A stretch of 64,000 nt of DNA from IMG/VR virus record IMGVR_UViG_3300046665_000548, positions 124,001-188,000 of that record; one strand, written 5' to 3'. A program made the translations under genes and the position numbers. The notes below the pieces were generated by a model that ran no database searches, had not been told where the DNA came from, and saw nothing but the letters and a program-made list of their open reading frames with translations. Shown here piece by piece: positions 11,483 through 60,135 of the stretch (positions are counted from its first letter, which is position 1; every line of letters starts with the position of its first letter).

Positions 11483-12637
11483 ATGACCCCAACATTCTGT
11501 GCTGCGGCTTGGTCGAACGCCGTTCTCAAAACAAACGGCCGAAGCTCTATCTGCTGCGCAAATTCGGAATCATACGAGGTGCCGCACCTCACCGAATCGC
11601 TTCAACATCCCGTTCGTCTCGCTGCACGCGAAACTATGTTGCTGGGTCAGCCCGCGCGCGGATGCGAATCCTGCTATATGACTGAGGCAAACGGATCAAA
11701 AAGCCTCAGACACGAATACAACAATATGTTCGAGAACTCGCTCGACCGCAAAAGGCTGAACGAGCCCGCATACAGCCCAATCATGTATTACGATCTCTCA
11801 CTGTCGAATACATGCAATCAGAAATGCAGAATGTGCGGCCCCGATTCCTCTACGCACTGGATAAAAGATTACGCCGCTCTCCAAAAAGAGGGAATAGCTC
11901 CGGCTCAGGAAAACCAAGCGCATAGTCAAATCAATTCAATCGATTCAATCATCGATTCGATGAAAAGAAGCCTTGTGATCAGGCTCTCACTGAAAGGGGG
12001 CGAACCCCTATACATGCGCGAGGTAAAAATTCTGCTGCGAAAGATGGTAGAAAATAATCTCCATAGACGAACAACCTTCCTCCAGATCATCACGAACGGA
12101 TCAGTAGCCGATCAAGAAACGCTCGATCTTCTTCGACATTTTCAAATCTGCTATATCACTCTAAGCATCGACGCGTGTGGTCCCCTCTACAATTACATTC
12201 GGGGATTTAACAAGCCGTTCGAAGAAGTCGAAGAATCATTCCGGAAGATCATCGAAGTGCTACCGAGACACGTCACGCCGCGCATCAACACGACTGTCCA
12301 AGCCCTCAACGTCCTGCATCTGAACGATCTCGAAATATGGATCAGAAAATTCTTCAACGGGCCAGTCGATCAATACCTGTCGTTGCTGATATACCCAAAT
12401 TTCCTCAACATCTCTAACCTTCCCCTCATCGTCAAAGAAACAGCCATCGCCCGGCTCCAGCCACTTGGAGCCAGAGCCAATCACATCATCGCTCGTCTGA
12501 ACGAAGAAGAAAATCCGGAACACTTTCGCCAGTTCTTCCCTTATACGAGGGCGCTCGATGCACGCCGCGACGAAAATCTTGAAAACGTAGCACCAGAACT
12601 TGCCGAAATGCTCAGTTACAAAAAAACTGAAAAATAG
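11483..12637 (+). CDS. radical SAM protein with N-terminal twitch/SPASM-like Cys cluster
   Basis: CNQKCRMC (CxxxCxxC), GGEP, N-terminal C...CC...CxxC; TAAATA 4 nt before the ATG. Confidence 0.85.
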   Translation: MTPTFCAAAWSNAVLKTNGRSSICCANSESYEVPHLTESLQHPVRLAARETMLLGQPARGCESCYMTEANGSKSLRHEYNNMFENSLDRKRLNEPAYSPIMYYDLSLSNTCNQKCRMCGPDSSTHWIKDYAALQKEGIAPAQENQAHSQINSIDSIIDSMKRSLVIRLSLKGGEPLYMREVKILLRKMVENNLHRRTTFLQIITNGSVADQETLDLLRHFQICYITLSIDACGPLYNYIRGFNKPFEEVEESFRKIIEVLPRHVTPRINTTVQALNVLHLNDLEIWIRKFFNGPVDQYLSLLIYPNFLNISNLPLIVKETAIARLQPLGARANHIIARLNEEENPEHFRQFFPYTRALDARRDENLENVAPELAEMLSYKKTEK

Positions 12638-12939: not shown

Positions 12940-13015
12940 GCTTCTGTAGCTCAGTTGGTAGAGCACTCGACTGAAAATCGGGGTGTCGGCGGTTCGAGCC
13001 CGCCTGGAAGCACCA
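12940..13015 (+). tRNA. tRNA-Phe(GAA)
   Basis: Cloverleaf, loop CT-GAA-AA, encoded CCA. Confidence 0.95.
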
Positions 13016-13031
13016 ATTCAATGCTGGTCAC

Positions 13032-13115
13032 GCGGGCGTGGCGGAATGGTTTAGACGCGCTGGCTTCAAACCCCAGTTCTTCGGAGTGGGGGTTCAAGTC
13101 CCTCCGCCCGCACCA
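13032..13115 (+). tRNA. tRNA-Leu(CAA)
   Basis: Class II, loop TT-CAA-AC, C31-C39 mismatch, A73, CCA. Confidence 0.85.
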
Positions 13116-13130
13116 GCATATACCAAGTTT

Positions 13131-13206
13131 AAGGGTGTAGCTCAATTGGTAGAGCGTCGGTCTCCAAAACCGAAGGTTGCAGGTTCGATGCCTGTCGCCC
13201 TTGCCA
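13131..13206 (+). tRNA. tRNA-Trp(CCA)
   Basis: Loop CT-CCA-AA, G73, CCA. Confidence 0.95.
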
Positions 13207-13207
13207 C

Positions 13208-13284
13208 GGTCTTATAGCTCAACTGGATAGAGCACCTGACTACGAATCAGGAGGTTTCAGGTTCGAGTCCTGATAAGACCGCCA
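13208..13284 (+). tRNA. tRNA-Arg(ACG)
   Basis: Loop CT-ACG-AA, A20, CCA. Confidence 0.95.
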
Positions 13285-13330
13285 CCTTATAGTCCACTTG
13301 GGCGCATCCACGGGGTGCTCTAGGCCGACT

Positions 13331-13405
13331 GGTCCGTTAGCGCAGCGGTAGCGCATTCGCCTTCGAAGCGACTGGTCGGCGGTTCGAATCCGTCACGGAC
13401 CTCCA
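13331..13405 (+). tRNA. tRNA-Arg(TCG), atypical identity elements
   Basis: Loop CT-TCG-AA, U73, no A20, CCA. Confidence 0.85.
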
Positions 13406-13448
13406 AATACGTGAAGGCTACGATAGTGCCAGCGAGACGATTTTTGAT

Positions 13449-13524
13449 GGGCGTATAACTCAGTTGGTAGAGTAGCTGACTCTTAATCAGTTTGTCGCAG
13501 GTTCGAACCCTGCTGCGCCCACCA
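13449..13524 (+). tRNA. tRNA-Lys(CTT)
   Basis: Loop CT-CTT-AA, A73, CCA. Confidence 0.95.
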
Positions 13525-13535
13525 AAAATCGTTTT

Positions 13536-13622
13536 GAGCCGGTGTCCCGAGTGGCGAAGGGGGCGGACTTTTAATCCGTTGTTGAGAGACCATCGTGGGT
13601 TCGAGTCCCACCCGGCTCCCCA
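13536..13622 (+). tRNA. tRNA with TTT (Lys) anticodon in a class II, Tyr-like body
   Basis: GAGCCGG/CCGGCTC acceptor, loop CT-TTT-AA, 15-nt variable region, C73, CCA. Confidence 0.8.
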
Positions 13623-13673
13623 TCTATCTCAGTTTCGCGAAGCTAAATACTAGTTTAGCTCAGTAGGACTGAA

Positions 13674-14213
13674 ATGTTTTCTTGTGATGTTTGCTCTAAA
13701 GATTTTGCCACTTATCGCGGCTTAAACGGACACAAAAGACTCCATGGAGAATCCAGGGGGACGTATGTTGAAGGCTCTAGAGTTGGCGTTGGAGGGAAGA
13801 AACCGTTTAGACAAAACAAACCGTGCCAACGGTGCGGTCAAGAGTCTTTGAACAGCAAATACTGTTCGAATAAGTGTCAGAACGCTTATGAAAAAAGCTC
13901 TTTGATTGAGGACTGGCTGAACGGAAAAGACTCAGGTCTAGCTGCGGGCAACCGTCTGAAGAAATCAATACGTGATCATCTTCTTGCAGAAGCAGAATAC
14001 AAGTGCTCTTCATGCGGTTGGGACAAGATCAATCCAAAGAGCGGAAAGACTCCGTTAGAGATAGATCACATCGACGGAAATTCGGACAATTGCGTGAAAG
14101 ATAACCTAAGGGTCTTGTGCCCTAACTGTCATTCTCTGACGCCCACATATCGGGCGTTAAATTACGGTCGCGCAAATAAAGGTAGACTAAGATACTCTCG
14201 CCTGTGTAAATAG
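13674..14213 (+). CDS. HNH homing endonuclease with N-terminal C2H2 zinc finger
   Basis: CDVC...H-x3-H, LEIDHIDGN...NLRVLCPNCH; inserted within the tRNA cluster. Confidence 0.9.
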   Translation: MFSCDVCSKDFATYRGLNGHKRLHGESRGTYVEGSRVGVGGKKPFRQNKPCQRCGQESLNSKYCSNKCQNAYEKSSLIEDWLNGKDSGLAAGNRLKKSIRDHLLAEAEYKCSSCGWDKINPKSGKTPLEIDHIDGNSDNCVKDNLRVLCPNCHSLTPTYRALNYGRANKGRLRYSRLCK

Positions 14214-14220
14214 GGGTATT

Positions 14221-14296
14221 GGCCGGTTAGCTCAGCGGTAGTAGCGTTTCCTTTACATGGAAAATGTCGGGAGTTCGATCCTCTCACCGGCTACCA
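14221..14296 (+). tRNA. tRNA-Val(TAC)
   Basis: Loop TT-TAC-AT, A73, CCA. Confidence 0.9.
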
Positions 14297-14995: not shown

Positions 14996-15754
14996 GTGAA
15001 ACAGATGTCTGCAAAATTCGATAGCCTCGTTGAACGTTTGGTCAAGAAGATGGGTCTGTCTCAGACTCCAGTTCCTGGCTTCATCATTGGCCTCAGCGGC
15101 ACCGATTCAATCATTGCATTCCTCTTGGCTTACCGTGCATGTGAGCGCCTCGACCTCCCTCCTGGTGGGATGGCTGATCGCCTTCTTGGCGTTCACTACA
15201 AATCTGGCGATAAGGTCGATTGGTTCGAGGCTGAGATCATGCCTTGGCTTGCTGCCGAATGTCCCAAAGCTACTTTGATAACTCGCGTGCCACGTGGCGG
15301 AAACGCCGATCCTCAGCGTTGGGCGGATATGCACCTACGTGCGTTAAATTCAAACGTTGATGAGAACACCACGCGATACACGCCGCACGATGCAGGCAAG
15401 AACTATTGGGTTGCCGGGACCATCAACGCTACTGAAAAGGTTCTTGGCAAGTTCAGCATGCTCGCGGAGAGCGTCAGCATCCAACTTATTCAGACCGTGT
15501 GGAAGAGCGAGATCATGGCTCTTTGTGAAGAGTATGGTGTGCCGTCGATTGCGATGGAGATGTCGCGTATTCCTGATTGTCTATGCGGGCGTGACGAGAT
15601 CGCGGCCAACAACATTGAACTTATTGATCAAATCATTCGTCACAAGGTGAAGCCATCTGAGCATCCACCTGAATTGCTCGATACGCTGTTCTCGTACATC
15701 GCGATGGTCAGGTCAGAAAATGACTTTAAGAATCGCATTCCGTACACAATTTGA
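14996..15754 (+). CDS. NAD synthetase (NadE)-like PP-loop protein
   Basis: IIGLSGTDS PP-loop, GTINATE...LG, WKSEIMALCEEYGVP. Confidence 0.65.
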   Translation: MKQMSAKFDSLVERLVKKMGLSQTPVPGFIIGLSGTDSIIAFLLAYRACERLDLPPGGMADRLLGVHYKSGDKVDWFEAEIMPWLAAECPKATLITRVPRGGNADPQRWADMHLRALNSNVDENTTRYTPHDAGKNYWVAGTINATEKVLGKFSMLAESVSIQLIQTVWKSEIMALCEEYGVPSIAMEMSRIPDCLCGRDEIAANNIELIDQIIRHKVKPSEHPPELLDTLFSYIAMVRSENDFKNRIPYTI

Positions 15755-15875
15755 GCAGTCGAGCTTTACGAATTTACTAAAAAACCTTCTCTCGCGCCTT
15801 GACTAACTTCACGTTCTGGTAGACTTTACGCGTGCCGGGCGATTCCGGTGTGGTCAGCAACCAGGACGGGGAAAG

Positions 15876-17276
15876 ATGTCATCACAAGACTTGATCGCGG
15901 CGCGCGATCTTATTCGCGAGCAGGGTGAAATTCTTGAGCGTTACGCCGAGGGTGGATTGACGCTGGCTTCCGTTCTGTCCGTCACGAACGAGCGCGTGTT
16001 GATTTCCACATCGTCGGGAATCATGGAAACCGCTCGTCCCAAGGAGATTTGGGGTAAGAAACTTAAGCCGGGTTCGGCTGTTCTCATAATCGAAGGCGCA
16101 ATCGTCAAGACGTGCGATATGCTTGCCTATGGAAGTATTTCGACAGTCTCTCGGCTTGTGGACGCAACCACGGTCGAGGTTACCTCCGAAGGACAGCCAC
16201 GTTTGGTCTATTCTGGCGTTGCTTGTCAGGTTGGTGATACGGTTTGTCTTGACGCGACCAATCGCGTCGTCGTGCGAGTTCTTCCGCAAGACAGCAAACG
16301 TTTCGAGGTGGCTATTCCGTTCGTCTCTTGGGATCATATCGGCGGCCAAGAACAGGCCAAGATGGAGATGCGCGAGGCGGTCGAATTGCCGCTTCTGCAC
16401 CCGAAGCTTTTCGAAGCATACGGCAAGAAGCCGTCTCACGGCATCATGCTGTACGGTCCTCCCGGCTGCGGCAAGACCAAGATCGGCAAAGCAACGGCAT
16501 CGTCCCTTGCTCAGCGCGGTGATGGCGGCGGCTTCATGTATGTCAAGGGCGCGGAAGTGCTCGATCCTTACGTGGGCGTGGCTGAAGCTACTGTGCGGGC
16601 GATCTTCGACCGGGCGCGAAAATACAAGAACGAGACGGGGCAGCAGGCTGTGGTGTTCGTTGACGAAGCCGATGCTATTCTCGGTCGGCGCGGCGGGCGG
16701 CAGTCTCATATGGAGAAGACAATCGTCCCGACTTTCTTGACCGAAATGGACGGTCTCGAAGAGTCTGGCGCGATGGTGATCCTTTCCACGAATCGTCCGG
16801 ACACGCTCGACTCGGCCATTACTCGTGACGGTCGTATCAGCCGTCAGGTGAAGGTATCTCGACCGACGAAGAAGGATGCGGCTGAAATCTTCAACATCTA
16901 TTTGAAGGACAAGCCGCTGACAGACAAGTCGGCCGAGGTGGCTGAGGCTGCGAGCCACGCGTTGTATGATCCGGCTCTTCGGATTTTCTCGTTGAAGCTT
17001 TCGGACAACACCGATCATGATTTCACTCTCGCCAATCTCGCCAGCGGCGCGATGGTCGAAGGTATCGTGGATCGGGCGGTGTCTCGGGCTATGCGCCGGG
17101 ATATCGAAAACAAGGAACGTAAGGCCACGGGTCTCAAGGCAGAAGATGTGCTGGAGGCCGTTGTTAGCACGTATCGTCAGAACATCTCTGGCGATCACAT
17201 CGAGGCTCTAGTCGATTTCGCGGATGGTCGCGAGATCATGAGAAAGGATAGGTACCATGTTTCAGAAGCAGCGTAA
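15876..17276 (+). CDS. ARC/Mpa-like AAA+ ATPase
   Basis: N-terminal coiled coil and OB-like region, WDHIGG, GPPGCGKT, VFVDEAD, TNRPDTLDSAITRDGR, SGAMVEGIVDRA. Confidence 0.85.
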   Translation: MSSQDLIAARDLIREQGEILERYAEGGLTLASVLSVTNERVLISTSSGIMETARPKEIWGKKLKPGSAVLIIEGAIVKTCDMLAYGSISTVSRLVDATTVEVTSEGQPRLVYSGVACQVGDTVCLDATNRVVVRVLPQDSKRFEVAIPFVSWDHIGGQEQAKMEMREAVELPLLHPKLFEAYGKKPSHGIMLYGPPGCGKTKIGKATASSLAQRGDGGGFMYVKGAEVLDPYVGVAEATVRAIFDRARKYKNETGQQAVVFVDEADAILGRRGGRQSHMEKTIVPTFLTEMDGLEESGAMVILSTNRPDTLDSAITRDGRISRQVKVSRPTKKDAAEIFNIYLKDKPLTDKSAEVAEAASHALYDPALRIFSLKLSDNTDHDFTLANLASGAMVEGIVDRAVSRAMRRDIENKERKATGLKAEDVLEAVVSTYRQNISGDHIEALVDFADGREIMRKDRYHVSEAA

Positions 17277-17466
17277 GGTTGGTGACGGCGGCGGTTCCCC
17301 CAACATGCCGGGGTACGATCCGGCTGGTGGCCGCGAGGCCAAGGATGCTGTTGCCAAGGCAAAGGCGATGATGTCGAAGCTCGACGGCAGCATCAAGTCC
17401 TCGCAAAACGAGGAAAAGGCGCAGAAGAAGAAAGAGGAGTGGACGGGCCGTGGGTGTGTTTGCTGA
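17257..17466 (+). CDS. small disordered protein, Pup-like N-terminus, C-terminal GCVC
   Basis: MFQKQRKVGDGGG...; AAAGGA SD; overlaps the ATPase stop. Confidence 0.6.
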   Translation: MFQKQRKVGDGGGSPNMPGYDPAGGREAKDAVAKAKAMMSKLDGSIKSSQNEEKAQKKKEEWTGRGCVC

Positions 17467-17821
17467 ATACTTTATTCTGTGTGCTCTTGCGGTGTCGGCC
17501 ATCTCTTTGACGGTCGCCCGCACGAAGATCACAATGCAGGCAAGGGACTGGGCATTGGATCGATCTCCAATGCTCGGACACCTTTTGGGTTGCCCTTATT
17601 GCTTGTCGCACTGGGCGGCGTTCTTCGTAGCGTTCACCTTTCCCTACCAGGGCTTGGTGCATTTCGTGATCCTGACGTTCGGCCTCATTGGGGCTAGCGC
17701 GATTATCACTGCACTGGTCGTGCATTTCTTGCTCAAGCAAGAAAACGAGATCGAGTATCTTCGAGAAAAGCTCACGGAGTCTCGTGATATGATCCAGTCG
17801 CTACTCCCCAACGAAGACTAG
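17450..17821 (+). CDS. DUF1360-like membrane protein
   Basis: LGHLLGCPYCLSHW motif, TM helices; GAGGAG SD. Confidence 0.65.
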   Translation: MGVFAEYFILCALAVSAISLTVARTKITMQARDWALDRSPMLGHLLGCPYCLSHWAAFFVAFTFPYQGLVHFVILTFGLIGASAIITALVVHFLLKQENEIEYLREKLTESRDMIQSLLPNED

Positions 17822-18228
17822 CGGTTATCGAATTCGAATTTGGCGTATCCGACTGACTTTCTGCCGGTGATCCTGAATCCTTTGGTGATCCGCAGAAAGT
17901 TTGGTACGTCCTTGATGGCCCAGTCGTGGTCACCGAGTGGAATCCACTCGCACTGGATATCGCCGTCTTTGTCTGGCGTCACGATGATGATAGCCACCTC
18001 TCCATAAATGTGAAGACCCTGGCTCATTGGCGAATGGGTCGCTTCCATAGCATCCCAATAGTATTGATTCCCAGCCTCATCGATCAGACCGCGCAATTCG
18101 GTGTGCATCTTAAGCCCGGCGAGGAATTGCGTTCGGGAAGGGTTCGCGTACACCCTCACGTTCTTGTTGAAGATTTGTATCTGGAGGATTTTACCCTCGG
18201 TGAGGGTCAAGACTTCACGTATACGCAT
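17818..18228 (-). CDS. late leaderless hypothetical protein (paralog of 20176-20601)
   Basis: TAAATA 4 nt upstream; MRIREVLTLTE; NP...LRGL.D. Confidence 0.7.
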   Translation of the reverse strand: MRIREVLTLTEGKILQIQIFNKNVRVYANPSRTQFLAGLKMHTELRGLIDEAGNQYYWDAMEATHSPMSQGLHIYGEVAIIIVTPDKDGDIQCEWIPLGDHDWAIKDVPNFLRITKGFRITGRKSVGYAKFEFDNR

Positions 18229-18235
18229 CCGATAT

Positions 18236-18742
18236 TTAGGCTCTGTATCGATCAATTACCGCGAAGCATCGTGCGAGGTCTGGCATCATCTGCGTGGCCT
18301 CGATTTTGAAGCGGTCGTATTCCATTGGCTTCTGAATCTTGATTGCTCGGATAGCTTTCACGACGCCCTGAACGGGTCCGACAATCCGTTCCTCATATTC
18401 AGAATATGTTGGCGAGCCGCTTTTGAAACCGTCATCGAACGGCACGATCTTATGACGTTGCACGAGAATGTTGCGGTCGAAGACAATCACCGCGCCGCAT
18501 ACAGAATTTCCTGAGGGAAGGCATTGGATCAACTGATCTTCGATGTCGGTATCTTCGAGATCGATGAGCGTTCTGGTTGTTGCGAATTTCGAAGCGATAG
18601 CGGGTGATCGCGTGAGGCTTGCTGATCGAGCGCCTTCTGCGGTCAGTCTATCCGTTTCAATGATACGTACGAGCCATGGTAAACTGGTCCCGTGGTACAA
18701 GACAGATTGTCCAACATCTTCGTTGAGTTCGCGTACTAGCAT
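18236..18742 (-). CDS. ART-like protein, late leaderless
   Basis: LYHGT...SLTRS...EYEE; TAAATA 4 nt upstream; MLVRELNE. Confidence 0.6.
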   Translation of the reverse strand: MLVRELNEDVGQSVLYHGTSLPWLVRIIETDRLTAEGARSASLTRSPAIASKFATTRTLIDLEDTDIEDQLIQCLPSGNSVCGAVIVFDRNILVQRHKIVPFDDGFKSGSPTYSEYEERIVGPVQGVVKAIRAIKIQKPMEYDRFKIEATQMMPDLARCFAVIDRYRA

Positions 18743-18774: not shown

Positions 18775-19041
18775 ATGGATATTCGTGCAATCATGAACCT
18801 CATTGAAGGTTCTTCAATCTACCCGTCGAAGAAGCATGGATCAGACCATGATTACGATGATAAGCATCTCGCTGCGCTAGAAAAAGCAGGCGTCGGTAAG
18901 GGTCCTTCTATTGAGGATCAGAAGAAGGAACGCGACGACGCCAAAGAGCGTGTTGCTGACAAGCGCGAAAAACGCGCCGTTTCCGAAGAAGAGCGCGTCC
19001 AGGTTCGCGAGTGGTTAGATCGGATTCTCGATAACCGCTAA
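18775..19041 (+). CDS. late leaderless small charged protein
   Basis: TAAATA 5 nt upstream; MDIRAIMNLIE. Confidence 0.7.
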   Translation: MDIRAIMNLIEGSSIYPSKKHGSDHDYDDKHLAALEKAGVGKGPSIEDQKKERDDAKERVADKREKRAVSEEERVQVREWLDRILDNR

Positions 19042-20099
19042 GAGACTATCTCTGGCAGCGGCCGACCGATGAACGGGATGTTTTCGAGTTCGAAGACATC
19101 CTTCGCCAAAATCAGGCAGCCGTGTCCGGTCAAATTGAAGCGCCGCGTATTGTGACGCTTTGCCAATTCAACCACCTCCTCAACCTCTTCCAACGCACCG
19201 CACGGCACGAGACTGTTCGTGTAAGGCGCGTCTTCGATATAGACGTGCGCGTGCATCATGTACTGGGCATCATCGAAGCGGCTGAACAGTTCACGCTGTA
19301 TCGGCGCATCGACTGACGGCTTTGCCTCTCCATAGTATTGGATTTGCGGCGTTAGTTCGGCTTCAATAGCCACGAAACCATCTGTGCTGATCTGGCGCTT
19401 GTCGATGTTACGCCGAGAGATGTAGAGCTTGTCTTCGTGTCGGAATGCCGGGAAGCCGCCCTTTGTACAGCGATACGAAGCATTGCCGAGGAAGCGCGAA
19501 GGGTTCACGCCATGGACCAATTCATGGAAGCGATCCGCGTAACCGTGGACGAACCCGAAGAACCGCTCCAGGTCTGCATTAGACGGCGACGCAATGGCTT
19601 CACCAACTTGCTTGGACCCAAGTCGGGTAAAACCCATAAGAGCCTTGGTGCGCCCATACAGGGCTTGCGCGACGGTTTCCACGTTTCCTTCACGCCACGC
19701 GAATGCGTTTCCGAGCGGATCGAGCACCGAAGCGTGGAAGGGAGCGCCGGTATCGATGATCAGGCTCAGGTTGGCGCGGGCCGCCAGCATGCGCCCCACG
19801 ATATCAATCGGCTGATACTTGTCTTGACTGTTGTTCTTTGAGATTACCAGGACGGTTCTCGGTGCATTCTGCTTCAATGATCCGACGAACTTCGGAACCG
19901 AGTTGTCGATCTCCGGCATCCACCAGATTGCCCGATACCGGTGACAGTCGCCAAGGATTCGCGAGAGATCATCGAGAGACCCGCCGTTGATCAGGGTTAT
20001 GTCCGCGTCAGGTAGGGCGGCTGCGATCTTCGCCATATAGCCCGATGGCTTACCGCCTTCATGATCGAAACGACCGGCCACGAACAGAATTTCTGACAT
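19038..20099 (-). CDS. class II aldolase/adducin-domain protein
   Basis: GNAS.R, KPSVDAPIQ, MHAH, GHG motifs. Confidence 0.65.
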   Translation of the reverse strand: MSEILFVAGRFDHEGGKPSGYMAKIAAALPDADITLINGGSLDDLSRILGDCHRYRAIWWMPEIDNSVPKFVGSLKQNAPRTVLVISKNNSQDKYQPIDIVGRMLAARANLSLIIDTGAPFHASVLDPLGNAFAWREGNVETVAQALYGRTKALMGFTRLGSKQVGEAIASPSNADLERFFGFVHGYADRFHELVHGVNPSRFLGNASYRCTKGGFPAFRHEDKLYISRRNIDKRQISTDGFVAIEAELTPQIQYYGEAKPSVDAPIQRELFSRFDDAQYMMHAHVYIEDAPYTNSLVPCGALEEVEEVVELAKRHNTRRFNLTGHGCLILAKDVFELENIPFIGRPLPEIVS

Positions 20100-20175
20100 T
20101 TTGTAATCCCACGGTGTATTGTTTCGACTCAATCTACATCATTTCGATATTCAAGCAAGCGAAGTAAATACTCTC

Positions 20176-20601
20176 ATGAATATGCGAGAGATCATGAACC
20201 TGACCGAACGAGCTTCGGCGGTCAGGGTGACGACCCGATACGGCGACGAGAAAAAGGTTGTGGTTCATCGCAATCCTACCGCTATGGACCTTCATGCGTT
20301 CTTCTCAAATAAGGGCGATCTACGTGGTTTGTTGGACGTATCTAGTGGTACCGTTTTCTGGTGGGCTGCGGAAGAAGCTGTTCATTACGACGTGATCGAC
20401 GCGCTCGGGCTGGATAACTCGAAGGCTCTCTATGTGTATCCGGAGAGTTCTCCCGAAGCCGAATACTACGAACGCAATACTGGACGCCAGCCCCACGAAG
20501 CTGTTCTGTTGTATCCTAATTTGGATCAGAAAGTTGTTTTGAGCAATCGTTTCATCAAGTCTTACATGGAAAGCGGAATGTTTGATCCGCAGCGATACTG
20601 A
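20176..20601 (+). CDS. late leaderless hypothetical protein (paralog of 17818-18228)
   Basis: TAAATA 5 nt upstream; MNMREIMNLTE. Confidence 0.7.
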   Translation: MNMREIMNLTERASAVRVTTRYGDEKKVVVHRNPTAMDLHAFFSNKGDLRGLLDVSSGTVFWWAAEEAVHYDVIDALGLDNSKALYVYPESSPEAEYYERNTGRQPHEAVLLYPNLDQKVVLSNRFIKSYMESGMFDPQRY

Positions 20602-25233: not shown

Positions 25234-25308
25234 GTGCTTGTAGCTCAGTGGTAGAGCGCTCGGCTGATAACCGAGAGGTCGGAGGTTCGAGCCCTCCCAG
25301 GCACACCA
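25234..25308 (+). tRNA. tRNA-Ile(GAT)
   Basis: Loop CT-GAT-AA, CCA. Confidence 0.95.
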
Positions 25309-25325
25309 CATTTTTTGGAGGGAAG

Positions 25326-25523
25326 ATGAAGATCAGCGCGTTAGAACTACGACTCGCTGAGGCGAGAGAACGATTTGGTGATCTAGATGTCTACGTTGGA
25401 GAGGCAAGCTCTCAGCTTCGATCTCGTATCGACGTGAACGTGGATAGCGCCATCGCCAAAGGCGAAGACGAAACGGGTGAACGAAAAATCTGCATCGTCC
25501 AGGCTTATGTCATTTTCTCCTGA
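25326..25523 (+). CDS. small hypothetical protein within the tRNA cluster
   Basis: GGAGG SD, 65 aa. Confidence 0.6.
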   Translation: MKISALELRLAEARERFGDLDVYVGEASSQLRSRIDVNVDSAIAKGEDETGERKICIVQAYVIFS

Positions 25524-25547
25524 CTAAATTATTGAGTGAAATGGAAT

Positions 25548-25622
25548 GCTGGTGTAGCACAGCGGTAGTGCAGTCGCTTCGTAAGCGAAAGGTCGGGAGT
25601 TCAATCCTCTCCACCAGCACCA
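25548..25622 (+). tRNA. tRNA-Thr(CGT)
   Basis: Loop TT-CGT-AA, CCA. Confidence 0.93.
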
Positions 25623-25632
25623 TTTTCTCAAC

Positions 25633-25707
25633 GCCGGTTTAGCTCAGCGGTAGAGCAGCGGTTTTGTAAACCGAAGGTCGGGAGTTCAATCCTCTCAACC
25701 GGCACCA
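25633..25707 (+). tRNA. tRNA-Thr(TGT)
   Basis: Loop TT-TGT-AA, CCA. Confidence 0.93.
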
Positions 25708-25715
25708 CACGTTTA

Positions 25716-25790
25716 GCTGACTTAGCACAGTGGTAGTGCACCTCATTGGTAATGAGGAGGTCGCCGGTTCGAACCCGGCAGTCAGCACCA
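25716..25790 (+). tRNA. tRNA-Thr(GGT)
   Basis: Loop TT-GGT-AA, CCA. Confidence 0.95.
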
Positions 25791-25791
25791 C

Positions 25792-25866
25792 GGGAACATA
25801 GCTCAGCGGTAGAGCGTCTGCTCGACATGCAGAATGTCCAAGGTTCGATTCCTTGTGTTCCCACCA
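25792..25866 (+). tRNA. tRNA-Val(GAC) with C33
   Basis: Loop TC-GAC-AT, CCA. Confidence 0.9.
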
Positions 25867-38817: not shown

Positions 38818-38892
38818 GGGGGTGTAGCTCAATGGTAGAGCCGTTCACTCATAATGGACCGGTCGCTGGTTCGATTCCAGCCGCCCCCACCA
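38818..38892 (+). tRNA. tRNA(CAT), most likely Ile2 (lysidine type)
   Basis: Loop CT-CAT-AA; CTCATAAT...GGTCGCTGGTTC resembles E. coli Ile2; paired 1-72, so not an initiator. Confidence 0.85.
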
Positions 38893-43982: not shown

Positions 43983-44057
43983 GAGCGCGTAGTTCAGCGG
44001 AAGAACACCGCCGTCCTAAGGCGGGTGTCGCAGGTTCAAATCCTGCCGTGCTCTCCA
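43983..44057 (+). tRNA. tRNA-Arg(CCT)
   Basis: Loop GT-CCT-AA, A20, U73, CCA; TAAATA at 43970-43975. Confidence 0.9.
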
Positions 44058-59817: not shown

Positions 59818-60135
59818 ATGCGTAAGGTGCCCAGGCGAAGGAGCACGACTGCTCGTGCTCTGTCCGACACTCGCTACCGTCAGCGGGTAGTCATCTCGAA
59901 GAAGGTTTATTCCAGGAAGGCTCGATCTCAGAAGGTCGAGCCTTCTGACTTCCGGGGATGCGGAGATTGGGTGGGGTATTCTCCGCATATAGTGCGGAGA
60001 ATGATTGGCACGCCCGGAGAGATTCGAACTCCCGACCTACAGGGTAGAAACCTGCCGCTCTACCGGCTGAGCTACGGGCGCATGCGATTATTTAACATTC
60101 TCGATACCAAAAGAATAGCAAAAATGCTTGCATAA
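59818..60135 (+). CDS. ArfA-like (alternative ribosome-rescue factor) basic protein, probably from a truncated mRNA
   Basis: ARALSDTRYRQRVVISKKVYSRK resembles ArfA [30 protein letters not shown] SD; in-frame hairpins before any stop. Confidence 0.55.
   Translation: MRKVPRRRSTTARALSDTRYRQRVVISKKVYSRKARSQKVEPSDFRGCGDWVGYSPHIVRRMIGTPGEIRTPDLQGRNLPLYRLSYGRMRLFNILDTKRIAKMLA
60006..60081 (-). tRNA. tRNA-Arg(TCT)
   Basis: Reverse-complement cloverleaf, loop TT-TCT-AC, G73, CCA; TAAATA at 60089-60094. Confidence 0.92.

Follow-up and report, generated by a model that had tools for sequence, protein, structure and literature searches.

A huge phage genome of 607,744 bp carries a module of three overlapping genes, encoding a proteasome-type unfolding ATPase, a small protein from a family related to the bacterial tag Pup but ending in Cys-x-Cys, and a small membrane protein. 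The module recurs, usually with overlapping genes, in about 40 uncultured phage contigs and genomes of CPR bacteria (Patescibacteria), and no Pup ligase or proteasome gene was found in the phage genome or in the five triad-bearing small genomes examined, so that it looks like an undescribed, ligase-free offshoot of the Pup system. The module was identified in a window of 64,000 nucleotides (positions 124,001 to 188,000 of IMG/VR record IMGVR_UViG_3300046665_000548), in which a first-pass annotation had described an ARC/Mpa-like ATPase, a Pup-like peptide with a terminal CxC and a DUF1360 membrane protein with a CPxC motif. That description of the sequence is borne out. The accompanying interpretation, a proteasome-independent unfoldase or extraction module in which a Pup-like adaptor attaches through Cys (by disulphide or shared zinc) to a membrane partner, is supported only in part.

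The three genes and their predicted products

The three open reading frames lie on the + strand at 15876-17276 (466 aa), 17257-17466 (69 aa) and 17450-17821 (123 aa, GTG start), overlapping by 20 nt and 17 nt, and each start is preceded by a Shine-Dalgarno-like purine run. The single upstream promoter proposed in the first-pass annotation rests on weak evidence: TTGACT and TAGACT, separated by 15 nt, can be read by eye at 15799-15825, about 50 nt upstream of the ATPase start, but a consensus scan, which requires a spacer of 16-18 nt, did not report it.

The first gene encodes an Mpa/ARC-type AAA+ ATPase. Besides a PF00004 match, its best NCBIfam model is TIGR03689 (pup_AAA), matched over nearly the full length (model positions 24-482 of 512, E 1.9e-82), although the score of 277.6 bits falls below the curated equivalog cut-off of 504.75 bits, and the PDB sequence match to Mpa (5kwa) covers residues 44-436. 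The AlphaFold2 model (pLDDT 88) contains an N-terminal helix (aa 3-24, 15882-15947), two consecutive OB-like beta-barrels (aa 29-80 and 85-136, 15960-16283) and a single AAA module (aa ~150-440, 16323-17195), and the top 30 PDB hits in a Foldseek search with this model are all Mpa, over about 470 aligned columns and at E values of 5e-36 to 8e-30. The N-terminal helix is the counterpart of the Mpa coiled coil that binds Pup (PMC8223512), binding here being inferred. The AAA module contains Walker A GPPGCGKT (aa 194-201), the pore loop PYVG (aa 231-234), Walker B VVFVDEAD (aa 259-266) and the SGAM...IVDRA motif, which is shared with actinobacterial ARC; K200, G234, D263, E264, N306, R317 and R320 are invariant in 30 homologues, indicating that the ATPase and pore-loop residues are intact. 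In contrast, the C-terminal GQYL or penultimate aromatic motif that docks Mpa on the 20S core (PMC8223512) is lacking: the protein ends HVSEAA, only 3 of 113 members of its clade have an aromatic penultimate residue, and there is no GQYL.

The second gene encodes a 69-aa protein that begins MFQKQRKVGDGGG, with a basic, Gly-rich N-terminus and a helical middle, and ends GCVC, the codons of the terminal Cys-Val-Cys lying at 17455-17463. It belongs to a family of 56-104-aa proteins for which the evidence of homology to Pup is at the level of the family profile. A profile of 34 members finds Pup as the two best of 177,635 PDB sequences (E 0.0065 and 0.0083), aligning the N-terminus and the DDLLDEIDDVLEE helix, and the Pup N-terminus cited in the first-pass annotation is as printed in that alignment. 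A profile without the Cys tail picks true actinobacterial Pup genes (ending KGGQ) out of 17,326 ORFs at E 8.6e-5 and 0.02, and an hhalign comparison with one of these gives 90% probability (E 1.5e-6). Each of these links is modest in E-value, and the window's own protein is a divergent member whose likeness to Pup rests on a chain of links: it has no Pfam, PHROG or NCBIfam hit, and pairwise BLASTP against a true Pup gives E 0.04. A leave-one-out HMM of its relatives finds it at E 3e-4, as the only hit among 5,807 ORFs of the genome, whilst the tail-less version of that profile does not find it; it does, however, match the family member from one other locus (L004) by BLASTP at 2.9e-8, and L004 in turn matches the tail-less profile of the others at 4.5e-4. 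Single-sequence searches with the 69-aa protein, by word index and by exhaustive phmmer over 1.8 billion representatives, returned only the protein itself, and the family became visible only through synteny; similarly, a search for related loci with the single ATPase sequence found nothing, whereas an alignment-based scan did.

The third gene encodes a three-helix membrane protein that matches PF07098 (DUF1360) above the Pfam gathering score (28.1 vs 21 bits) and also phrog_781. In the AlphaFold2 model (pLDDT 95) its CPYC motif (residues 48-51, codons at 17591-17602) sits at the start of the second membrane helix, and the positive-inside count, with 3.9 Lys and Arg in the loop before CxxC against 1.0 and 0.4 on the other side, places CxxC on the cytoplasmic side. 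All 34 DUF1360 partners in the alignment match PF07098 (best E 3.9e-9), with no other Pfam family found, and all keep R32, C48, C51 and W55. A PDB fold search returned nothing at E <= 0.001, and AFDB fold hits are mostly DUF1360 entries. The top AFDB cluster hit bears the name of the prepilin peptidase A24 N-terminal domain (PF06750), but kinship with this Zn-binding domain of PilD was rejected because no aligned DUF1360 partner matches PF06750 and hhalign against five PilD N-domains gives 1.3% probability.

Distribution and conservation of the module

The triad was found in 38 loci by automatic criteria, plus variants, in viral contigs and Saccharibacteria/Parcubacteria-type genomes. The spacing from the small gene to the DUF1360 gene is always -59 to +33 nt, the two overlapping or abutting in all 36 loci, and the spacing from the ATPase gene to the small gene is within about 30 nt in most loci; there is no fourth conserved gene. 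On the ATPase tree the triad is clustered (16 changes against 32 in shuffles), and the clade is separate from actinobacterial ARC (support 95), its closest cellular carriers being CPR bacteria rather than Actinobacteria. Among cultured phages none with the triad was found, the search returning only distant ATPases in Brevundimonas phages without the other two genes. No match to Pup ligase/Dop (PF03136) or the proteasome (PF00227) was found in the window, as the first-pass annotation had noted, nor anywhere else in the phage genome, nor in five triad-bearing genomes of 0.9-1.3 Mb.

Co-conservation of the genes and of the terminal cysteines, the absence of either having been set beforehand as grounds for rejection, was found for both. 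All 34 small proteins in the family alignment end in CxC or a Cys cluster with 0-6 further residues, and none has GG[QE]. As this alignment was assembled from ORFs chosen for Cys tails, its invariant Cys columns are partly built in, and the unbiased counts are those conditioned on DUF1360 and those from the tail-less search. In the former, every locus with DUF1360 downstream of the ATPase has a Cys motif in the intervening small protein; in the latter, the complete new proteins retrieved, six in number, all end in CxC. By comparison, CxC within the last six residues occurs in only 0.4-0.9% of six-frame ORFs of this size. This conservation also rules out a chance ORF. Where DUF1360 is absent, the Pup-like ORFs after the ATPase carry knuckles of 3-4 Cys/His instead of a bare CxC, and some loci carry two or three different Pup-like ORFs.

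Two other identities were considered for the locus. An anti-phage defence system was not supported, PADLOC giving only generic AAA matches and nothing for the other two proteins, and a RiPP precursor, suggested by the Cys-rich C-terminus and a radical SAM gene 3 kb upstream, was dropped because the radical SAM gene is not co-conserved and the conserved neighbours are the ATPase and DUF1360.

Mechanistic interpretation and alternatives

We favour, with a probability of roughly 0.55, a conserved, translationally coupled module derived from the Pup-ARC/Mpa system that works without Pup ligase, depupylase or proteasome. The analysis itself establishes the three parts, namely an Mpa/ARC-type ring unfoldase that is catalytically intact by its residues and lacks the docking tail, a small-protein family homologous to Pup in its N-terminal basic/Gly part and its helix but with Cys-x-Cys in place of Gly-Gly-Gln/Glu, and a DUF1360 membrane protein with an invariant CxxC at the cytoplasmic entrance of its second helix; how they act together, including any binding, threading or metal coordination, is our inference. 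In this view the small protein, as Pup does on Mpa, would lay its helix on the ATPase coiled coil and offer its N-terminus to the pore, whilst its CxC, pointing away from the ring, would couple non-covalently or by disulphide to DUF1360, for example with two thiols from each chain sharing one zinc. The link that pupylation makes enzymatically would then be hard-wired genetically, and the unfoldase would be brought to the inner face of the membrane, there to pull on, remodel or release DUF1360 or whatever DUF1360 holds. The two Cys pairs would lie on the same side of the membrane, the small protein having no membrane segment, and the Cys/His knuckles in loci without DUF1360 fit the idea that CxC is half of a site. 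Nevertheless, the proposed Cys link to DUF1360 has no direct support: a prediction of the complex of DUF1360, the small protein and zinc scored 0.02, which we take as evidence in neither direction. Furthermore, CxxC is a family-wide feature, conserved in actinophage DUF1360 proteins that have no ATPase, of which only 3 of 6 have a Cys-rich upstream ORF, so CxxC may serve DUF1360 itself, and four triad members have CC..CC tails whose four Cys do not need a partner's thiols.

A more far-reaching version, which we regard as possible but doubtful, is that phages and CPR bacteria use a ligase-free form of 'pupylation', in which a Pup-derived protein is joined through its Cys-x-Cys, by a shared metal or a disulphide, to CxxC-bearing partners such as DUF1360, and an ARC-type motor pulls on the joined pair to extract the membrane protein, release it or trigger it, for example as a timed membrane event in infection. 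The varied Cys-knuckle tails of sister Pup-like proteins would then be interchangeable targeting heads for one unfoldase.

Of the alternatives, the one that survives best, though it remains the less likely, is that the small protein docks on the ATPase as above but its tail does not bind DUF1360, instead forming its own metal site between two or more tails, like a zinc hook, or recognising other targets, such as host proteins, for delivery to the unfoldase; DUF1360 would then be an independent co-factor or simply one substrate. The self-sufficient knuckles in loci without DUF1360, the loci with several Pup-like ORFs, the CC..CC tails and the actinophage proteins that keep CxxC without any Pup-like partner are consistent with this. 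However, DUF1360 downstream of the ATPase is never seen without a Cys-bearing small ORF directly before it, the two genes overlap or abut, and a bare two-Cys tail is the rule exactly where DUF1360 is present.

It is unlikely that the terminal cysteines are a site of covalent chemistry, lipidated or joined by disulphide or thioether to target cysteines, with DUF1360 as the membrane enzyme or oxidoreductase in a Cys-based counterpart of pupylation. The CxC lies at or within 0-3 residues of the C-terminus, CPYC sits at a helix N-terminus with invariant His, Ser, Arg and Trp nearby, and CGC and CPYC motifs are redox-active, CPYC being the glutaredoxin-type motif; but CxxC faces the reducing cytoplasm, DUF1360 has no detectable similarity to any known enzyme in the PDB fold and Pfam searches, and there is no evidence of modification. 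It is similarly improbable that the small protein is a convergent low-complexity peptide, such as a regulator or inhibitor of the ATPase or a membrane-associated peptide, with a merely compositional likeness to Pup. Whilst the lack of any Pfam, PHROG or NCBIfam hit for the window's protein, the failure of phmmer with it to find anything but itself and of the tail-less profile of its relatives to find it, and the fact that only 2 of 34 members touch Pfam Pup (PF05639; best E 0.058), favour this, three independent profile tests point specifically to Pup, the matched segment is the Mpa-binding helix, the gene sits directly after an Mpa homologue, and CPR members read ...EVDDLLGEIDQLL..., close to the Pup helix. 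Classical pupylation by host enzymes, with processing to expose a Gln/Glu, ligation by a host PafA and degradation by a host proteasome, is largely refuted, despite the derivation of the ATPase and small protein from the Pup-ARC system, by the lack of GG[QE] and of the docking motif, the absence of ligase and proteasome from the five cellular genomes, and the CPR rather than actinobacterial affinity of the closest cellular carriers.

Relation to known systems

The closest known system is Pup with Mpa/ARC of Actinobacteria, including proteasome-less lineages that keep ARC and Pup. The ATPase architecture and fold are the same, the small disordered protein has, at family level, a Pup-like N-terminus and helix, and the actinobacterial ARC genes retrieved here (Actinomycetaceae, Bifidobacterium) also lack a GQYL end while having true Pup downstream. 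The present module differs in that no gene for PafA, which ligates Pup to lysines, for Dop, which removes it, or for the 20S core was found, in the CxC terminus, in a Pup-like gene that directly follows and overlaps the ATPase gene, in its DUF1360 partner and in its phage and CPR carriers. UBact, a Pup homologue reported in several Gram-negative phyla, is likewise a Pup relative outside Actinobacteria encoded next to an Mpa-like ATPase; its loci reportedly keep the ligase/depupylase and proteasome genes and a C-terminal Gln/Glu, none of which was found here. Literature searches on DUF1360, UBact, Pup-like proteins, pupylation in bacteriophages and Pup with Mpa in Patescibacteria found no description of such a system within the library searched.

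As mechanistic analogies only, without homology, in the CD4/CD8-Lck zinc clasp and the Rad50 zinc hook two short Cys pairs on different chains (CxC + CxxC, or CxxC + CxxC) share one zinc, and the motif arithmetic here is the same. Membrane-anchored AAA+ machines (FtsH, Msp1, Cdc48 with membrane adaptors) offer a further parallel, since a ring unfoldase would be held at the cytoplasmic face of a membrane with its entry face toward the bilayer, although here, by inference, the anchor would be a separate three-helix protein joined through a Pup-like adaptor, without a protease domain.

Pup is regarded as a tag that needs a dedicated ligase and mostly serves a proteasome in Actinobacteria and a few other phyla. 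The sizeable Pup-related family described here, in phages, including genomes of 480-607 kb, and in ultra-small CPR bacteria, with a chemically different terminus and a fixed membrane partner, would show how the Pup-unfoldase pair can be re-used without conjugation, and points to a phage-encoded unfoldase acting at the host membrane. It also gives a first functional handle on DUF1360, a widespread phage and bacterial membrane family of unknown function. In actinophages, for example Gordonia phage Sixama (gp71) and the mycobacteriophage PG1 gp7 family, DUF1360 keeps the CxxC..W motif, in seven members, without an accompanying ATPase, and in seven actinophages the gene sits immediately upstream of the portal gene, which is annotated as portal in five of them.

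Three overlapping genes and their predicted products

The window (bases 124001-188000 of a single 607,744-bp virus record rated as complete by CheckV) carries 16 tRNA genes and many phage-type genes, and therefore derives from a huge phage of unknown host. The first-pass annotation described three overlapping genes at 15876-17821, under one upstream promoter, and this observation is confirmed: three + strand ORFs lie at 15876-17276 (466 aa), 17257-17466 (69 aa) and 17450-17821 (123 aa, GTG start), overlap by 20 nt and 17 nt, and are each preceded by a purine-rich run resembling a ribosome-binding site. Whilst a promoter-like sequence (TTGACT, 15 nt, TAGACT) is present at 15799-15825, it was not listed by a consensus promoter scan, so that the proposal of a single promoter remains a guess.

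The first gene encodes an ATPase in which Pfam identifies one AAA domain. The best-matching NCBIfam family is TIGR03689 (proteasome ATPase), aligned over positions 24-482 of 512 with E 1.9e-82, although the score of 277.6 bits is below the equivalog cut-off of 504.75 bits, and among single-ring PDB proteins Mpa (5kwa) aligns over residues 44-436. An AlphaFold2 model built from 30 homologues (pLDDT 88) contains a helix (residues 3-24), two beta-barrels (29-80 and 85-136) and one AAA module; its 30 best PDB fold matches are all M. tuberculosis Mpa (E 5e-36 to 8e-30), followed by eukaryotic Rpt subunits at about 1e-25. The Walker A/B, pore-loop Y-V-G, sensor and arginine residues are invariant in the family, and the SGAM..IVDRA motif is shared with actinobacterial ARC. 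However, the protein ends ...SEAA, and only 3 of 113 relatives have an aromatic penultimate residue, so that the GQYL-type proteasome-docking motif (PMC8223512) is missing.

The 69-aa product of the second gene, taken alone, matches nothing in Pfam, PHROGs or NCBIfam, and both a word-index search and an exhaustive phmmer search recovered only the protein itself. Accordingly, we collected homologues of the ATPase, together with their loci from viral contigs, genome contigs and assemblies (designated here by L numbers), and examined the genes downstream. In about 40 loci the ATPase is followed by an ORF of 56-104 aa and then by a membrane protein of 100-165 aa. The small ORFs share a basic N-terminus (4-7 Lys/Arg in the first 16 residues), a Gly/Pro-rich stretch, a helix motif of the type ..P-E-V-D-D-L-L-x-E-I-D-x-L-L.., and a C-terminal Cys-x-Cys with 0-3 further residues, usually CGC, CGCW, CTC or CRC.

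Three tests agree that this family is related to Pup. Firstly, a profile of 34 sequences, searched against 177,635 distinct PDB sequences, gave Pup as the two best hits (7px9_G, E 0.0065; 3m9d_G, E 0.0083), with the alignment covering the N-terminus and the Mpa-binding helix. Secondly, a profile from which the Cys tail had been removed, searched against 17,326 six-frame ORFs from all of the loci retrieved, identified genuine actinobacterial Pup genes (E 8.6e-5 and 0.02) that end in KGGQ and lie about 1.5 kb downstream of the ARC gene in Actinomycetaceae. Thirdly, hhalign of the family against one of these Pups gave 90% probability (E 1.5e-6) over the helix. Single members rarely reach Pfam Pup (2 of 34, best E 0.058), and the window's protein is itself a divergent member: a profile of the other 33 sequences finds it as the only hit among 5,807 ORFs of its genome (E 3e-4), but does not find it when the tail columns are omitted. 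It matches its nearest relative, the small protein of locus L004, at E 2.9e-8, and the L004 protein in turn matches the tail-less profile of the remaining members at E 4.5e-4. The Pup assignment for this particular ORF is therefore transitive, and is reinforced by its position directly after an Mpa homologue.

The third product matches PF07098 (DUF1360) above the cut-off, as well as phrog_781, and all 34 partner proteins match DUF1360. Their alignment contains invariant R32, C48, C51 and W55, and near-invariant T21, G43, L45, S53 and H54, with the consensus G-x-L-x-S-C-P-Y-C-x-S-H-W. The AlphaFold2 model is very confident (pLDDT 95) and comprises a membrane helix (2-24), two short helices (26-47), a membrane helix (49-62) that begins immediately after C48, and a long helix (69-118). 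The loop preceding CxxC carries 3.9 Lys+Arg on average, compared with 0.4 and 1.0 on the other side, such that by the positive-inside rule CxxC and the C-terminal tail face the cytoplasm. A fold search found no solved structure that resembles it, and the AFDB hits are mostly DUF1360 entries; one is named after the prepilin-peptidase N-domain, but this relationship was supported neither by Pfam nor by hhalign against five PilD N-domains (1.3% probability).

Conservation and distribution of the gene triad

Of 142 loci with an ATPase homologue and at least 900 nt of downstream sequence, 38 contain both partners by automatic criteria, and four more have variant motifs or a short flank (L007, L017, L021, L091). 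Locus L059, initially scored as having the membrane protein only, contains a small ORF with GCGCGG followed by an acidic extension. Every locus with DUF1360 after the ATPase thus has a Cys-bearing small ORF between the two, a count that is independent of how the alignment of small proteins was chosen; that alignment was itself assembled from ORFs selected for Cys tails, and so its invariant Cys columns are partly built in. As a further unbiased check, a profile lacking the last 15 residues was used to retrieve proteins from a collection of 5.8 billion, and all complete hits, including six absent from the alignment, end in CxC, whereas the background frequency of CxC in the last six residues is 0.4-0.9%. 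The spacing between the small gene and DUF1360 is -59 to +33 nt in all 36 loci, of which 21 overlap, and that between the ATPase and small genes is within about 30 nt in most. An all-against-all comparison of flanking ORFs identified no fourth conserved gene; in particular, the radical SAM protein (PF04055 plus a 4Fe-4S cluster domain, Fer4_12) encoded at 11483-12637, just upstream of the first tRNA array of the window, is not co-conserved with the triad. On a maximum-likelihood tree the phage/CPR ATPases form a group (support 95) apart from actinobacterial ARC and DPANN archaeal homologues, and the triad is scattered through this group but clustered (16 changes, compared with 32 in shuffles).

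The triad occurs on viral contigs of 13-482 kb and in genomes labelled Saccharibacteria, Parcubacteria, Woesebacteria, Uhrbacteria, Peregrinibacteria and others. In two Saccharibacteria contigs it lies among chromosomal genes, and in one of these (L166:1-9500) it sits beside a diversity-generating retroelement (bAvd and reverse transcriptase), AbiEii, RadC, an SMC-like ATPase, a SET-domain gene, an S24 repressor and a serine recombinase, in what looks like a mobile or defence island. It is rare there: 4 of 301 sampled genomes of that phylum have any DUF1360. Neither Pup ligase nor proteasome or HslV was found in five triad-bearing genomes of 0.9-1.3 Mb, nor in the phage genome, and no cultured phage in the collection has the triad. 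The distant "proteasome-associated ATPase" of one cultured phage, Brevundimonas phage Polewnik (L185:2075-3496), has its own disordered, Gly-rich N-terminal extension with a CGDPNC motif, but is followed by neither a Pup-like nor a DUF1360 gene.

In ATPase loci without DUF1360, the ORF after the ATPase often retains the Pup-like N-terminus (MQKQ+K.PG..) and helix but ends in a 3-4-Cys/His knuckle, e.g. ..ICICGxxGCxIGPF.. or CxxCGxxxC, in place of CxC. ORFs of this type directly after ATPase homologues are located at L004:5427-5669, L005:5446-5901, L006:5361-5717, L026:5369-5878, L050:5155-5427, L022:5133-5351, L038:5602-5847 and L029:5461-5757, and some loci have two or three (L004, L005, L006, L026, L094/L095). 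In the two Saccharibacteria contigs L094 and L095 a second Pup-like ORF (L094:3298-3540 and L095:3313-3558), with a very Pup-like helix (ETD+LLDEIDEILE) and a CGSCWG end, lies 1.4 kb downstream of the triad. The Pup-like part therefore behaves as a common, putative ATPase-docking module joined to variable cysteine heads, of which the bare two-Cys head goes with DUF1360.

DUF1360 is also found without the ATPase. In seven actinophages (Sixama, GMA2, Phendrix, Atuin, Zooman, Belphegor and phiAsp2; loci L168 and L179-L184, from Gordonia, Arthrobacter, Microbacterium and Actinoplanes phages) the gene lies immediately upstream of the portal gene (annotated as portal in five of the seven), and CxxC..W is retained. 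The ORF just upstream is Cys-rich in three of six, with a small Cys-rich ORF overlapping or abutting the start of the DUF1360 gene in Sixama, GMA2 and Atuin. CxxC is thus a property of the family and not only of the triad, which weakens, but does not exclude, the possibility that it shares a site with the CxC tail.

A possible ligase-free derivative of the Pup-ARC system

Our data establish, at the level of sequence, predicted structure and gene order, an intact Mpa/ARC-type motor, a small protein from a Pup-homologous family with a Cys-x-Cys end, a membrane protein with a CxxC that faces the cytoplasm, tight operon coupling, and the absence of ligase and proteasome from the genomes examined. 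In the established system Pup folds into a helix on the Mpa coiled coil, and Mpa then unfolds the tagged substrate (PMC8223512). The N-terminus of Pup enters the pore first. What follows is inference: the small protein would dock in the same way, leaving its C-terminus at the far tip of the coiled coil, and its CxC would then join the CxxC of DUF1360, either through a shared zinc ion, as do the CxC of CD4/CD8 and the CxxC of Lck, or through a disulphide, such that the motor is tethered under the membrane and can pull on DUF1360 or its cargo. We consider a ligase-free, Pup/ARC-derived module that acts together with DUF1360 to be likely (probability about 0.7), whilst the Cys-Cys link itself is tentative and somewhat less likely than not, the only direct test of it, a prediction of the complex, having returned no verdict. 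The interpretation in the first-pass annotation, of a proteasome-independent unfoldase/extraction module whose Pup-like adaptor attaches through Cys to a membrane partner, is accordingly supported only in part. We found no description of such a system in the literature that could be searched, and regard it as a variant of the Pup-ARC system rather than as Pup or Mpa proper, because defining features of both were tested and found lacking, i.e. the GG[QE] end, the ligase, the docking motif and scores above the family cut-offs.

Neighbouring genes and additional homologues

One further ATPase homologue (P0028, 748 aa) carries intein and HNH domains (PF14890, PF13392) and appears to be an intein-interrupted copy. 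Elsewhere in the same phage genome, outside the window, there is a second, distant AAA-type ORF of 536 aa (G000:C1:228506-228991; L002/L003), within which falls a weak Pfam Pup match (E 0.009) that is probably spurious.

The sixteen tRNA genes of the window (12940-14296, 25234-25866, 38818-38892, 43983-44057 and 60006-60081) lie mostly in two arrays, and an HNH endonuclease gene with a C2H2 zinc finger (13674-14213) sits between tRNA-Lys and tRNA-Val. An NAD synthetase-like protein (phrog_11189, E 1e-41; weak PF02540) is encoded directly upstream of the triad, at 14996-15754, and a 133-aa ORF at 14542-14943 matches only positions 2689-2796 of a 3,925-position PHROG profile (phrog_10691, E 1e-27), and looks like a stand-alone copy of a domain of giant phage proteins. 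Two unannotated ORFs flanking the region, at 17818-18255 (-) and 20119-20601 (+), are paralogues (BLASTP E 2e-8, 30% identity over 91 aa) with no family match, and a 364-aa protein encoded at 19038-20132 (-) weakly matches class II aldolase/adducin in its C-terminal part (PF00596, E 6.6e-6).
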